From positions 496,001 through 560,000 of the forward strand of contig JAKMXF010000144.1 of assembly GCA_024704765.1 (NCBI GenBank): 64,000 nucleotides of DNA. The letters are read 5' to 3'. The notes beneath the pieces were generated by a model that did no database searches, had not been told where the DNA came from, and saw only the letters and a list, made by a program, of their open reading frames with translations. The DNA comes from Oopsacas minuta (lineage: Eukaryota; Animalia; Porifera). Positions 11,029 through 60,513 of this stretch are shown here, in pieces; the first letter of the stretch is position 1; each line of letters begins with the position of its first letter. The position numbers and the translations under genes were made by a program.

Positions 11029-14000
11029 ATGACAAACATTTTCATTTGTAGTATAAAATGCATTACTTTATACTATTGTTCTATTAGTAACGCATCATTT
11101 GCTACACATCAAGAATACGATCGTGCTTTTGTGGAATTCAACAATTTCACCATAGAAGGTAATAAAATCAGACTCTCTCCAGGTCGACCAATTGGATTAG
11201 ATTTAACACGAATTTCTCTCTTTCCCGAAAAGATGTCATCCTTTTCTCCAAATCAAAATGATGAATTCCCTCCTCTACCTCCATCTACTAATGCCTCACC
11301 CTCTCCAGATGTAGATCCCAATCTTGTACCCAATAATCTGAATTTGAACCCCACACAGTCTGTCCCACCCCAAGTACTTATTCCTACACAGGCCCAACAG
11401 ATGCGACCTCAAATCCACCTCCTTCCAAATCCTGGTGTTTCCTCTAGATTCCGTATGCCTAATAATCCTAACTTTCACCCTCCCAATCCCCCTCCAATCT
11501 TACCAGATAATCCTCTTATCATGCCAACCAATCCTCCTACCATATCAGCTGATCCTACTACCATTCCAGATCCCTCCACTACAACTACACATGATACACC
11601 TTCTGCAGAAGCAGCCCTGTATTCACCTGAATCTACTGATGCTAACAATCTGTATTGTGATGGTCCACTAAAGATAGCTGAGCATAGTGGTGATGAAGGA
11701 TTTGAAGTGACAGTTGATGACGTAAGCCCTACTGTCCTAGCTCCATTAGCCTCCTCGATTATTGGTATGTCTGGTGGTAACCTAGACCAGCCTACACAGC
11801 CCAATCTAGACGGTACCCCTACCATTCCTGCACCCCCTCTGGTGAACAAATCCCCTGAAAAAGACCTCAAGCAGAATCAAACTATAAATCCAGAAATCAA
11901 ATCTGATGAACCAGTAATTAAACAAGACACACATCCCAATGAATTCCCTACAGCTGTGAATGGCTATGCCAATGGGATAGATGGACTTGAACATACCTCT
12001 TCTTTCTCATCTGAAGTAAACCGGGCTAATCTAGCTGGACGCTACATGTTTTCTGATAACACCGATCCCAGAAAAATCAACAAGGAGTTCCCTTTCAAGG
12101 TGACATACGTACCTGACTTCATGAATGTTTATGGTATAATTGGTTACCATGACGACTTACAACAATTCGATGCAATGAAAGCTGAAATGAAGGAAATATG
12201 CGATAAAGCAAAGAACCCACTTTCTGTTAGTGCACTATTCCCTAACAATATGTACATATATCTGGACCCTCAAGGTGAAGCATTTCGCGTGCTCTTCAAA
12301 TCTAAACATGAGAAGAATGAATCTTCTCTCCTACTAATTGATATAGGAAGGTTTCTACCCACTGGTCACGAATCTCTCTATCCTATTCCGGAAGAATTAG
12401 CAGAAATACCCTATCTCTGTATCAGACTCAAACTCAATAACGTTAGAACACCTCATTTTCTCACTAAGTCCGAAATGTTTGAGATTGGAAAGATGTTCAT
12501 AAAAGCATTCCATATTTATACAGCTTATAAACATGGTTTGGATAAACATGGATGTCTATATATTGATCTTGTTGAAAATGACATTATAGTCAACAAGAAA
12601 ATCATGGATTATCTGGCCACTTATAATCCCAATTTCCCTCTAACATCCCCTGGTTTTACTCGCTCCCAGTTTTCATTTCCACCCTTCAATCCTGCACCCC
12701 CTAGCTCCACCCAACAAGTCCCTACCCAGACACAACAAGAGCTCATATACTGTAACGATATACCATTTCATTTTCTATCTCCACGGACTACCTGTACAAT
12801 AACCACACTCAATATAACTTCACCAGTACGTATATACGCTACGGAATATCATCCAGAAGCAATATCCAAACTAGACACCTTACAGACAGATCTGAATACA
12901 CAAGCTCCTACATTTAATCCTGTTACTCATCCTGAATTGGGATTATTCGTCACTGCCTATAGAACAGTGATTGGAGCATGGTGTCGTGCCGAAATTGTCC
13001 AGATACTCAATGAATCTTTATGTTCCATATTTTATATTGATCATGGTTGTCATGAAGCGATTGTTCATGACAAACTGAGACTGCCTAGTCCAATTTTCAA
13101 GACACTACCCAAACAAGCATTGACTCTCTCACTGGACAATGTATTATCTATAAATCCGACTGGAGAGTGGGATCAAATTGCTACTGACTTTGTTAAGACT
13201 CATTGCATTAACAAGAAGAGAGTTATTAAGGTAGTGGATAAAGTTAAAGATTTATTTCAAGTGATTCTATTTGAAGATGATTCTTGTCAAAATACGATAA
13301 ATCAGAAATTAGTTGAACTTGGACTATGTACCACTATAAACTCTGCACCCTATACTTACCCCAAGCAGTTTCCCCTCTCTGGTCCTGTTCCTGATAAATT
13401 TCGTTCCTCTACTGAGGATAGACCGTATACTGCTCAGCCTAAGAAGAAATGGGTACCTGATAATCCTATATACGCTCCTGGACAGCCAACTAAACAACAA
13501 CTAGAAGTGGGACAGAATACTTCCACTGATAAAAATCGTGCATATCCTCAGTCTAGAAATGATACCAGTTCACATTCAGGTTTTAACATGCACCAGCAAC
13601 AATCATCAGTACGAAATATGTTTGTTCCGCGGCAAATTTCGAATTTTAGTCAAGATTCTCAGAGTTGCTGTGGACGACAATCTTACCAAAGCAACAAATC
13701 TCCTCATCGTAATAATAACAAATTCAATCAGGGCCAAAGTTCAAATCGATACAACAATAATACAAACACGAATCAAGCATCCAACAGACACAATAATAAT
13801 AATAATCAAGGATACCATAATACATATCCAAATAGAAATTATAACCGTAACTACTTTGATAATCAACAACAAAACTATTTCCAAAATAGCCAACGATCAC
13901 AGAGTAATAATTTCGGACATGCTACTAAAGTGTCACCTCGTAAATCTAAACCGCAAGTTATTGAGACGAAATTAGGAGAACAGACGCCGATATTCTTCCC

Positions 14001-59508: not shown

Positions 59509-60513
59509 ATGAGTTACGAAGAGAATATAAACTCTTGGTATCAGAATGAAGATGCCATCATTGAAATGTCAGACCTAGCCGATTTTGGATCTACAGTACA
59601 ACAATTTCAAAACCCCTGTCCGTCTGGAGATAATTTTCAACAATTAAAGAGAGATGTTATCGATGCTAAACTTCTTGAAAAGTATGCTGAACCCTTCCAA
59701 AATATGTTCACTGAATCTCCTAGTTCTAAAACGGAACACAAACCTTCTATTTTTAAACCCCAGAGTCCCTGGGAAGGTGAAAGCTACCATTTGGAAAATT
59801 TTATACCATTTTTAACAAAGCCGAAGAAACAAAAATTATATAATATTCCTGGTCAAATTTACCCTACAAATTCCGATTCAATGGACACGCAAACTGATAG
59901 TGATATGTTAGATAGAGATTCTAATGTTAATACAGAGCATCAACAAATATTAAATTCACAAAATGAGCCAGATTTTGTTTGTGAGGAACAACAAACTCTC
60001 TCTCCTTTAGAGAAAGCAAATTTTGATTTTCTAAAAGAGTCACTCACTGCAAAAAATGAAGAACTGGAAGAACTAGCTAGAAATGAGATGTTGATTGGAG
60101 AAGAACCGATTCGACGAAAACCACAGCTATATCCAGGTTATAAACCTGAAATTAGCTTCTTGGATAAGATTACTAACAAAGATGGAGAAATAAAGAAATT
60201 GCCAGAAACTGATCTTACATCATCTCAGAGCTACAACAGGATACATACACAGTTATTAGTTCAACAATTTTGCGACTTGGCTAAAGGAGAAAGAGAAAAC
60301 AACAAACAAATACTAGATTTACAAAAATATTGTGAAGATAATTATTCAAAATCTCACCCCTTCCATAAAGATTTGACTTCTACAATAACTCATAGTGTAA
60401 ATATATTAGCAAAGTGTCGTAATGCTATTGCTAATACTCTAGCGATAGAAAAGCATGGTTTGATGATAGAACAAATGCTGGAAGATAAAGGGATTATAAA
60501 GCCTGATAAATAA
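59509..60513 (+). CDS. Intronless hypothetical protein (334 aa), acidic N-half and predicted helical C-half
   Basis: 1-kb ATG-initiated ORF in AT-rich DNA, preceded by TTTGTTTTTAG; no family recognised. Confidence 0.7.
   Translation: MSYEENINSWYQNEDAIIEMSDLADFGSTVQQFQNPCPSGDNFQQLKRDVIDAKLLEKYAEPFQNMFTESPSSKTEHKPSIFKPQSPWEGESYHLENFIPFLTKPKKQKLYNIPGQIYPTNSDSMDTQTDSDMLDRDSNVNTEHQQILNSQNEPDFVCEEQQTLSPLEKANFDFLKESLTAKNEELEELARNEMLIGEEPIRRKPQLYPGYKPEISFLDKITNKDGEIKKLPETDLTSSQSYNRIHTQLLVQQFCDLAKGERENNKQILDLQKYCEDNYSKSHPFHKDLTSTITHSVNILAKCRNAIANTLAIEKHGLMIEQMLEDKGIIKPDK

Follow-up and report, generated by a model that had tools for sequence, protein, structure and literature searches.

Gene organization of the run

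The window, the whole 64-kb stretch of Oopsacas minuta DNA that was analyzed (assembly GCA_024704765.1), contains a run of 15 non-nested, functionally unrelated genes, every one of them on the plus strand. The sequence-only reading had described these as 15 consecutive plus-strand genes, and Pfam and the deposited gene calls bear this out.

11029..60513, plus strand, run of co-oriented genes (Pfam and deposited gene calls)
11029-18090, plus strand, Tudor
18655-19741, plus strand, GOLM-like (type-II membrane coiled-coil protein; 5 RNA-verified cis introns)
20000-20809, plus strand, RPS4
21125-22267, plus strand, HTRA2
22734-26297, plus strand, RPTP
26579-29299, plus strand, EGF (EGF-repeat receptor)
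29438-30733, plus strand, GSTK
34213-36837, plus strand, PTEN
37443-38001, plus strand, CPLX (complexin)
38201-39217, plus strand, MOB1
40445-42691, plus strand, ZCCHC24
43550-44317, plus strand, PSMA3
45614-47287, plus strand, CCNT
47802-50514 plus 58243-59339, plus strand, DHX38
59509-60513, plus strand, ORF59509

The DHX38/PRP16 gene is a single gene, with a 7.7-kb cis intron (50515..58242, plus strand) that encloses two antisense genes.

50878-51885, minus strand, HMT, nested in the DHX38 intron
52078-57559, minus strand, anoctamin, nested in the DHX38 intron

Since both minus-strand genes lie within this intron, the earlier wording "non-nested" is correct. Joining the donor TTTGG/GTAAG at 50514/50515 to the TAG acceptor at 58242/58243 preserves the reading frame and yields the residues GNEM, which match KNEL (residues 875 to 878) of human PRP16. 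The TAG-ATG at 58242/58250 is an ordinary cis acceptor ahead of an internal methionine of DHX38, which the deposited annotation breaks into two genes.

All stop-to-start gaps given previously (258, 315, 281, 138, 199, and 169 nt) are exact, and the remaining ones measure 564, 466, 605, 514, 858, 1227, 1296, and 3479 nt. Thus, 8 of the 14 spacers are 138 to 514 nt long, two measure 564 and 605 nt, and four span 0.86 to 3.5 kb, in a genome with a mean intergenic distance of 2 kb (PMC10280926). Short spacers combined with co-orientation are the layout expected of an operon resolved by spliced-leader (SL) trans-splicing. The probability of 2^-14 previously assigned to the run holds for a single window but not genome-wide: with random orientation of 16,413 genes (PMC10280926), ∼0.5 runs of at least 15 genes are expected, so that the run by itself is not significant.

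Splice acceptors upstream of start codons

Most genes of the run carry an AG-ending triplet shortly before the start codon, and the YAG positions reported earlier (19991, 26568, 29428, 37427, 38186, and 59496) proved to be exact.

18616..18618, plus strand, TAG, probable acceptor of GOLM-like, 36 nt upstream of ATG 18655, at an RNA contig break
19989..19991, plus strand, TAG 9 nt upstream of the RPS4 ATG (20000); TAG at -6 to -9 in 4 of 4 relatives
21117..21119, plus strand, AAG 6 nt upstream of the HTRA2 ATG (21125); AAGTTGG(A/G)ATG kept in 5 species; contig break
22709..22711, plus strand, CAG acceptor 22 nt upstream of the RPTP ATG (22734), at the junction with a leader that the window does not encode
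26566..26568, plus strand, TAG 11 nt upstream of the EGF-repeat receptor ATG (26579); four relatives have TAG at -4 to -12
29300..29437, plus strand, EGF to GSTK spacer, 138 nt, in which TTTCTTGTATAG ends at 29428; 213-276 nt in relatives
37425..37427, plus strand, TAG 16 nt upstream of the complexin ATG (37443); YAG retained at -15
38184..38186, plus strand, TAG 15 nt upstream of the MOB1 ATG (38201); conserved
43543..43545, plus strand, CAG 5 nt upstream of the PSMA3 ATG (43550); conserved as CAG at -7
45596-45598, plus strand, TAG in a conserved block upstream of the CCNT ATG
47789..47791, plus strand, TAG 11 nt upstream of the DHX38 ATG (47802); conserved at -14
59494..59496, plus strand, TTTGTTTTTAG 13 nt upstream of the ORF59509 ATG; the gap after DHX38 is 169 nt

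Scored against background, the proposal that many ATGs directly follow a YAG stands for TAG, which is found at positions -4 to -17 (a range picked post hoc, after inspection of the data) of 13 of the 22 starts versus 23% in the background (P=4e-4), and weakly for YAG in general, which precedes 15 of the 22 starts at -3 to -25 versus 50% of random intergenic positions. The negative controls are flat: TAA, TGA, and CAG are not enriched before these 22 starts, and no enrichment is seen in the control window of -26 to -48. In the relatives, a YAG is retained at a similar distance in 25 of 32 orthologous starts, with flanks that cannot be aligned; both the acceptor and the 5' untranslated region (5'UTR) of RPTP are also conserved in Vazella. 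Unpaired acceptors are therefore enriched just upstream of starts, as SL trans-splicing requires. They are not confined to the run, as AnkKin and FWWh, the heads of a divergent gene pair, likewise bear a TAG (at -7 and -10, respectively).

Two other approaches to these sites were abandoned. An upstream in-frame stop codon was rejected as the explanation of the TAGs: an apparent excess in the window, where 9 of 16 are in frame (P=0.05), does not recur in the relatives, with 8 of 26 in frame and no reading-frame bias. A weight matrix of acceptors, based on cis introns rebuilt from annotated product lengths, was dropped because the lengths allowed thousands of reconstructions, the most parsimonious of which failed to recover the five RNA-verified introns of GOLM-like.

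RNA evidence for trans-splicing

The RNA evidence comes from contigs of one Oopsacas RNA run (X4), built on a k=31 graph. Contig 25 reads AAAAAACTTA followed, from position 22709, by CAGCATATAC, which starts at the RPTP acceptor (CAG, 22709-22711). The 10-mer AAAAAACTTA occurs neither in the 64-kb window nor in 12 further loci, and the contig that bears it is covered ∼6 times more deeply than the colinear RNA. The 5' letters of the RPTP mRNA, 10 nt read directly at this one gene, are thus non-colinear with the gene and joined at an AG acceptor, as in SL trans-splicing, and they probably belong to a common spliced leader.

At two other genes, the colinear contigs break off where trans-splicing would be expected to interrupt them. 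In a k=31 graph, a colinear contig ends 30 nt past the base preceding an AG at which a second AG-ending sequence joins, a rule that correctly gives the end of the intron-retaining contig 21, where the cis acceptor (19676) is verified. Upstream of GOLM-like, contig 20 stops at 18646, i.e., 18616+30, and at HTRA2, contig 22 stops at 21147, i.e., 21117+30. Both breaks fit an AG-ending partner in which the preceding base differs from that of the genome, e.g., ...CAG, and are likely to mark trans-splice sites, although contigs can also end for unrelated reasons, for example where very high depth produces 5'-end artefacts. The AG dinucleotide has a frequency of 0.062 here, and the DNA runs contain no variants in this stretch. 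No leader junction of RPS4 is present among the RNA rows listed. A loose end at 20004 (GCGCTCCCCAGAT, agreement 0.69) was considered as a leader and rejected, as its position is internal to the RPS4 coding region and it seems to stem from a different, partially matching RPS4-like sequence. Searches with the leader fragment found no SL RNA gene in the 64-kb window or in the fetched loci, and Rfam had no match in the window.

Taken together, the foreign letters at RPTP, the two contig breaks, the enrichment of acceptors, and their conservation across glass sponges support the operation of SL trans-splicing at genes of this block. As expected of an operon, downstream genes appear among those trans-spliced: RPTP by direct reading and, judging from the contig breaks, HTRA2 and GOLM-like.

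Transcription levels, spacers, and the operon question

RNA depth, measured as contig word depth and hence a crude and poor proxy for expression, is 2.6k for Tudor, 30-139k for GOLM-like, 100-159k for RPS4, 1-2k for HTRA2, and 1.4-1.7k for RPTP. The level of transcription is therefore not equal across the run, with steps of 40- to 80-fold at the Tudor/GOLM-like and RPS4/HTRA2 boundaries; GOLM-like with RPS4 and HTRA2 with RPTP are compatible as pairs. Colinear RNA crosses all four spacers examined, at depths of 46, 631, 680-880, and 215-326, in contigs that do not prove single molecules. Two upstream regions bear on the limits of transcription units.

30734..34212, strand not assigned, 3.5-kb gap without a credible ORF, with tandem repeats of 140-142 nt and a 9-nt microsatellite
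45455..45613, plus strand, strongly conserved noncoding block of ∼150 nt directly upstream of the CCNT ATG

The former is likely a boundary between transcription units. Conservation of the latter, which has no Rfam match and gave no covariation result, hints at a promoter.

Spacers of 138 to 315 nt leave little room for promoters compared with the 2-kb genome mean (PMC10280926), a counterpoint to separate promoters within the run. Likewise, RNA in the HTRA2 spacer, at about one-third of the depth of the gene itself, fits co-transcription equally well.

The main alternative to separate transcription units is that the tight pairs are true SL operons, transcribed from one upstream promoter into a polycistronic precursor from which trans-splicing frees and caps the downstream gene. 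The candidate pairs are GOLM-like to RPS4, RPS4 to HTRA2, HTRA2 to RPTP, RPTP to EGF, EGF to GSTK, CPLX to MOB1, and DHX38 to ORF59509. This reading is a serious one, albeit somewhat doubtful. Besides being far shorter than the genome mean, these 138-315-nt spacers have similarly short counterparts in four relatives (163-332, 239-308, and 213-276 nt), and the distance from the predicted poly(A) site to the acceptor is 111-396 nt. Contigs 20, 22, and 24 run colinearly from the predicted poly(A) site of the upstream gene past the downstream acceptor, and with a depth of 680 in the spacer versus ∼2,000 in HTRA2, a read-through of 0.6% of RPS4 transcripts could supply HTRA2. Depth is similar within the GOLM-like/RPS4 and HTRA2/RPTP pairs, and no conserved promoter-like block precedes RPS4.

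However, the 40- to 80-fold steps separate immediate neighbors, and depth in the spacers tracks the gene that precedes them rather than the gene that follows, as read-through would. Acceptors also precede genes that head divergent pairs, two genes are never spanned by a read or long molecule among the RNA contigs, and the leader is carried by only ∼4% of the long reads of Aphrocallistes vastus (PMC10282587). Gene order and orientation, kept in at least four other glass sponges including Vazella, would favor operons, but the antisense neighbors (apyrase, HMT, and anoctamin) share equally conserved synteny, so that synteny does not single out the co-oriented genes and was rejected as operon evidence. 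Moreover, the gap between HTRA2 and RPTP widens to ∼2 kb in one relative (L011).

The earlier proposal of polycistronic units processed by trans-splicing is thus partly supported, namely in its trans-splicing half. The run as a whole is at best a candidate operon, a status in part contradicted by the depth steps, the four spacers of 0.9 to 3.5 kb, the CCNT block, and the acceptors at divergent heads. Small sub-operons, with co-transcription of tight pairs, are possible.

According to a second alternative, the YAGs serve as acceptors of cis-spliced 5'UTR introns that start from short upstream noncoding exons, with no trans-splicing. The TAG-ATG at 58242/58250 is demonstrably a cis acceptor, and the shortest verified introns here measure just 56 nt, so that most spacers could accommodate a mini-exon together with an intron. 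Nevertheless, this explanation is very unlikely: the letters joined at RPTP are found neither in the 22.7 kb upstream nor in the rest of the window; no joints into 18619, 19992, 21120, or 22712 from within 18000-23900 are listed, while all five GOLM-like introns are; and SL trans-splicing is already documented in glass sponges. Finally, chance, which could place an AG near an ATG in AT-rich DNA (as the 50% of random positions with a YAG illustrate) and produce a long run among ∼16,000 genes, is largely refuted by the TAG-specific enrichment with its negative controls, the gene-by-gene conservation, and the RNA at three sites, and can hardly be credited.

Proposed organization of the block

The preferred reading, held with about as much confidence as doubt, is that this is a block of SL-acceptor genes that holds several transcription units, not one 50-kb polycistron. 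The block would be an old, compact, head-to-tail gene cluster of glass sponges, in which a functional 3' splice acceptor, in most cases TAG, would lie 4 to 36 nt upstream of the start of most genes. A leader encoded elsewhere would be joined at these acceptors by trans-splicing, removing the upstream sequence, whether this is the outron of the gene itself or RNA read through from the gene ahead. Separate promoters can be predicted at least upstream of GOLM-like and CCNT and downstream of RPS4 and GSTK. In such an arrangement, trans-splicing may shield tightly packed neighbors from each other's read-through.

It is tentatively possible that glass sponges have genuine SL operons, with co-transcription of tight groups such as RPS4-HTRA2, RPTP-EGF-GSTK, CPLX-MOB1, and DHX38-ORF59509. 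If so, the operon layout would be conserved across glass sponge families (Oopsacas and Vazella), and Porifera would gain its first reported operons. The block offers concrete conserved test sites (the named acceptors, the predicted poly(A) sites, and the 138-315-nt spacers) that bear on whether a non-bilaterian animal uses operons. It also reveals annotation errors in the deposited gene set, which ignores the leader and divides DHX38 in two.

Comparison with known systems

SL trans-splicing evolved repeatedly among animals, and how it relates to operons is a matter of debate. The earlier statement that it has been reported from hexactinellids agrees with the literature (Douris et al. 2010, as cited in PMC7986045); PMC7986045 places glass sponges with the groups for which a leader, but no operon, is on record. 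Demosponges and homoscleromorphs are not reported to have a leader. The Oopsacas genome paper makes no mention of SL trans-splicing (PMC10280926). O. minuta belongs to the same animal class as the other hexactinellids, and the process seen here likewise has a short non-colinear leader joined at an AG near the start codon. Glass sponge SL trans-splicing is already known. In A. vastus, the leader is ∼37 nt long and found on only ∼4% of long reads (PMC10282587), whereas in the present block a conserved acceptor precedes the majority of genes.

The SL2-resolved operons of Caenorhabditis elegans similarly combine unrelated co-oriented genes, with housekeeping genes mixed in, and have distances from poly(A) site to acceptor of the order of 100 to 400 nt. 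Nematode operons normally comprise 2 to 8 genes; the present run has 15 and, unlike them, shows large depth steps between neighbors. The tunicates Ciona and Oikopleura share with this block a compact genome, acceptors very near the ATG, and perhaps one leader class for monocistronic and downstream genes. Their intercistronic regions are often almost absent, whereas the spacers here are 138 to 600 nt long and have separate predicted poly(A) sites. Kinetoplastid polycistronic units resemble the run in being long same-strand series of unrelated genes and probably in adding an SL ahead of every gene, but differ from it in that here orientation flips are frequent outside the run, cis introns are common, and several promoters are suggested by the steps in expression and by conserved blocks upstream of genes.

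Gene content and orientation of the run

The gene map, assembled from Pfam scans and the deposited gene calls around four window proteins, places 15 co-oriented genes at 11029-60513 in this AT-rich window (32 to 41% GC) of the glass sponge Oopsacas minuta (assembly GCA_024704765.1, contig JAKMXF010000144.1, from about position 496001). Orientation flips among the genes outside this run.

Genes of the window (coordinates, strand, description)
2541, +, ORF, outside the run
3357-4763, -, FWWh, outside the run
6327-7691, +, Ank-kinase (AnkKin), outside the run
9024-10214, -, apyrase, outside the run
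11029-60513, all +, the run, in order: Tudor, GOLM-like, RPS4, HTRA2, RPTP, EGF-repeat receptor, GSTK, PTEN, complexin (CPLX), MOB1, ZCCHC24, PSMA3, cyclin T (CCNT), DHX38/PRP16, ORF 59509
50878-51885, -, homocysteine methyltransferase (HMT), between the DHX38 halves
52078-57559, -, anoctamin, between the DHX38 halves
After the run, -, alsin-like gene

The count of 15 non-nested genes made from the sequence alone is borne out, the antisense pair within the span being nested in one DHX38 intron. In the deposited annotation, DHX38/PRP16 is split into two genes of 791 and 344 aa (47802-50518 and 58250-59339). The N-terminal half ends in TTTGG/GTAAG, with the stop codon falling within the donor, and the C-terminal half is preceded by TTTCTATTAG/T. 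Because the joined halves give a protein colinear with human PRP16 at residues 874 to 885, DHX38 is a single gene, and HMT and anoctamin lie in its 7.7-kb intron (50515-58242). In Vazella pourtalesii (locus L014), HMT(-) and anoctamin(-) likewise follow the helicase C-domain exon. With this gene structure, “ATG 58250” encodes an internal methionine and the TAG 8 nt ahead of it is a cis acceptor, a case in which the TAG-before-ATG pattern on its own can mislead.

Approximately 0.5 runs of at least 15 genes are expected under random orientation among the 16,413 genes of Oopsacas minuta (mean intergenic distance, 2 kb; PMC10280926), so the orientation run by itself is not significant genome-wide. 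The gaps and YAG positions listed previously are all exact. In order, the stop-to-ATG gaps are 564, 258, 315, 466, 281, 138, and 3479 nt from Tudor to PTEN and 605, 199, 1227, 858, 1296, 514, and 169 nt from PTEN to ORF 59509. The 3.5-kb GSTK-PTEN gap, only ∼1.4 kb in Vazella, has no credible ORF and is filled in part by tandem repeats; at 31537-32609, it carries 140- to 142-nt repeats that are 98% alike and reach 3.8 copies, together with 17 copies of a 9-nt microsatellite. In the Tudor-GOLM-like spacer, a 40-nt piece (18353-18392) is a short dispersed repeat that recurs elsewhere among the DNA contigs of this sample. GSTK (29438-30733) comprises two tandem DSBA-like domains in 431 aa, a double form seen in four other glass sponges as well. 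The GOLM-like gene (18655-19741) encodes a 196-aa type-II membrane coiled-coil protein with no Pfam family; it is conserved in glass sponges, and the atlas features closest to it are similar to PV-1 and BST2.

Acceptor signals before start codons

The sequence-only reading saw candidate 3' splice sites just upstream of many start codons. In its general form this signal is weak, as any YAG at -3 to -25 is found before 15 of the 22 starts versus 50% of random intergenic positions. The excess is TAG-specific, at -4 to -17 (13/22 versus a 23% background; P = 4e-4, which is moderate evidence given that this interval was picked after data inspection). TAA, TGA, CAG, AAG, and GAG show no such excess before the 22 starts, nor does TAG in the control interval -26 to -48. 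In-frame stop codons do not account for the signal.

A search with the HTRA2 protein recovered orthologues on long contigs with 63 to 83% identity. One set belongs to Vazella, as the RPS4 and PSMA3 that it encodes match proteins of the Vazella transcriptome letter for letter; this locus comprises L005 and the overlapping L013. The gene order [apyrase(-), Tudor, small ORF, RPS4, HTRA2, RPTP, EGF, GSTK, PTEN, ... ZCCHC24, PSMA3, CCNT, DHX38, HMT(-), anoctamin(-)] is the same in Vazella and at least three other glass sponges. Since the antisense neighbors are kept as well, this shows generally slow rearrangement rather than a constraint specific to co-oriented genes. Although the spacers are mostly unalignable between species, individual genes retain their acceptor, and a YAG at -4 to -25 precedes 25 of the 32 orthologous starts of the relatives.

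Acceptors before orthologous start codons in glass sponges
RPS4: TAG at -6 to -9, 5/5 species
EGF: TAG at -4 to -12, 5/5 species
CPLX: YAG at -15/-16, across species
MOB1: TAG at -13 to -15, across species
PSMA3: CAG at -5/-7, across species
CCNT: TAG at -16/-20, across species
DHX38: TAG at -11/-14, across species
HTRA2: YAG absent in every species; invariant AAG/TTGG(A/G)ATG instead
ZCCHC24: acceptor absent in every species

Three conserved noncoding elements were also observed. Directly 5' of the CCNT ATG, a block of ∼150 nt (45455-45613) shows ∼85 to 90% identity between Oopsacas, Vazella (at 11325-11494 of L013), and a third locus, L015, far above the conservation of every other spacer. 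No Rfam family matches this block, which includes a GTGTGT...ACACAC hairpin and an AUUUUGG and could act as a promoter, as part of the 5'UTR, or as a small RNA. In the RPTP-EGF spacer, CATGTTCTTAGCC (26461-26473, ∼118 nt before the EGF ATG), is shared by three species and, in part, by a fourth; it resembles an acceptor, or else an element of a 3' end or promoter. In the CCNT-DHX38 spacer, otherwise unalignable, GCTCTTCTAAAGTTGTGACTTAGACTA (47501-47527) is nearly identical in three species.

RNA evidence for trans-splicing

Four runs of one sample, all seen as Logan contigs and not as reads, cover 18000-23900 (5.9 kb). Three behave as DNA; the fourth, X4, behaves as RNA, judging by its varying depth, GT..AG joints, and Illumina adaptors, and verifies five cis introns in the GOLM-like gene. 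X4 contig 25, of depth 1,394, begins at 22709; the ten letters ahead of that position, AAAAAACTTA, occur neither in the window nor in any fetched locus. Because the genome there reads ...TATATATTC/CAG/CATATAC, the join is at a CAG acceptor 22 nt before the RPTP ATG; the joined sequence itself probably ends in CAG, and the putative leader is seen over 10 to 13 nt. In Vazella, the acceptor is conserved along with the 5'UTR sequence that follows.

The overlap between neighboring DNA contigs is exactly 30 nt, which means k = 31; therefore, a colinear contig must stop 30 nt past its last private base wherever a second sequence joins. Contig 21, which retains an intron, stops as predicted for the verified acceptor 19647-48, at 19676 (19646 + 30). 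Contig 20 stops at 18646 (18616 + 30), where 18616-18 is a TAG 36 nt before the GOLM-like ATG, and contig 22 stops at 21147 (21117 + 30), the conserved AAG upstream of HTRA2 being at 21117-19. With an AG frequency of 0.062, the chance of both coincidences is ∼0.004, and the DNA runs contain no variants in 18000-23900 that could break contigs. These two ends, unlikely by chance, are supporting inferences for trans-splice sites and not proof, as 5'-end artefacts at very high depth could create branches too. No joints into these acceptors from elsewhere in 18000-23900 are among those listed, which argues against local 5'UTR exons. For the RPS4 acceptor, no X4 junction is among the rows listed, beyond which there are 251 further loose ends.

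Read-through and the operon question

Colinear X4 RNA crosses all four spacers in 18000-23900.

X4 word depth of genes and of the spacers that follow them
Tudor 3' end: 2.6k; spacer, 46
GOLM-like: 30-139k; spacer, 631
RPS4: 100-159k (GOLM-like equals it at ∼10^5); spacer, 680-880
HTRA2: 1-2k; spacer, 215-326
RPTP: 1.4-1.7k

Spacer depth tracks the upstream gene (0.5 to 2% of it, ∼15 to 24% for HTRA2) and is not tied to the downstream one, as expected of read-through. Contigs 20, 22, and 24 begin 29 to 30 nt before divergence points at ∼18222, 20912, and 22348, which we infer to be where Tudor, RPS4, and HTRA2, respectively, are polyadenylated. HTRA2 may have two such sites, the distal one at contig end 22600, which could alternatively reflect a second acceptor at TAG 22568-70. 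No AATAAA or ATTAAA lies within 30 nt upstream of 18222, 20912, 22348, or 22600. The resulting poly(A)-to-acceptor distances are ∼396, 207, and 363 nt (the last is 111 nt if 22600 is the distal site).

The GOLM-like mRNA (∼10^5) is implausible as a product of Tudor read-through (46), and HTRA2 is 50 to 80 times below RPS4 in depth; therefore, the run probably has several promoters. Read-through entering HTRA2 (680) amounts to one-third of the HTRA2 depth and includes the HTRA2 acceptor, and the RPS4 promoter may well be the source of some HTRA2 mRNA. Small operons, and a separate promoter for each gene with trans-splicing insulating it from read-through, are both compatible with the X4 data, in which contigs are no proof of single molecules and word depth is crude. 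The evidence points against one large operon spanning the whole run, given the four spacers of 0.86 to 3.5 kb, the HTRA2-RPTP gap of ∼2 kb in the relative locus L011, the conserved CCNT block as a candidate promoter or 5'UTR element, and the TAGs at -7 and -10 of AnkKin and FWWh, heads of a divergent pair, so that the acceptor is not specific to downstream genes. Thus, of the proposal that spliced-leader trans-splicing resolves operons here, trans-splicing is supported by the RPTP junction, the contig ends, and the kept acceptors, and the run as a single operon is disfavored by the depth steps and long spacers.

Relation to known systems

A literature search turned up no report of nuclear operons from glass sponges; such operons would be new and are unproven. 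The Oopsacas genome paper does not mention trans-splicing or operons (PMC10280926). Trans-splicing here is a known mechanism, and the sites at which it is seen are new and well defined. In Aphrocallistes vastus, a leader of ∼37 nt is carried by only ∼4% of long reads (PMC10282587).
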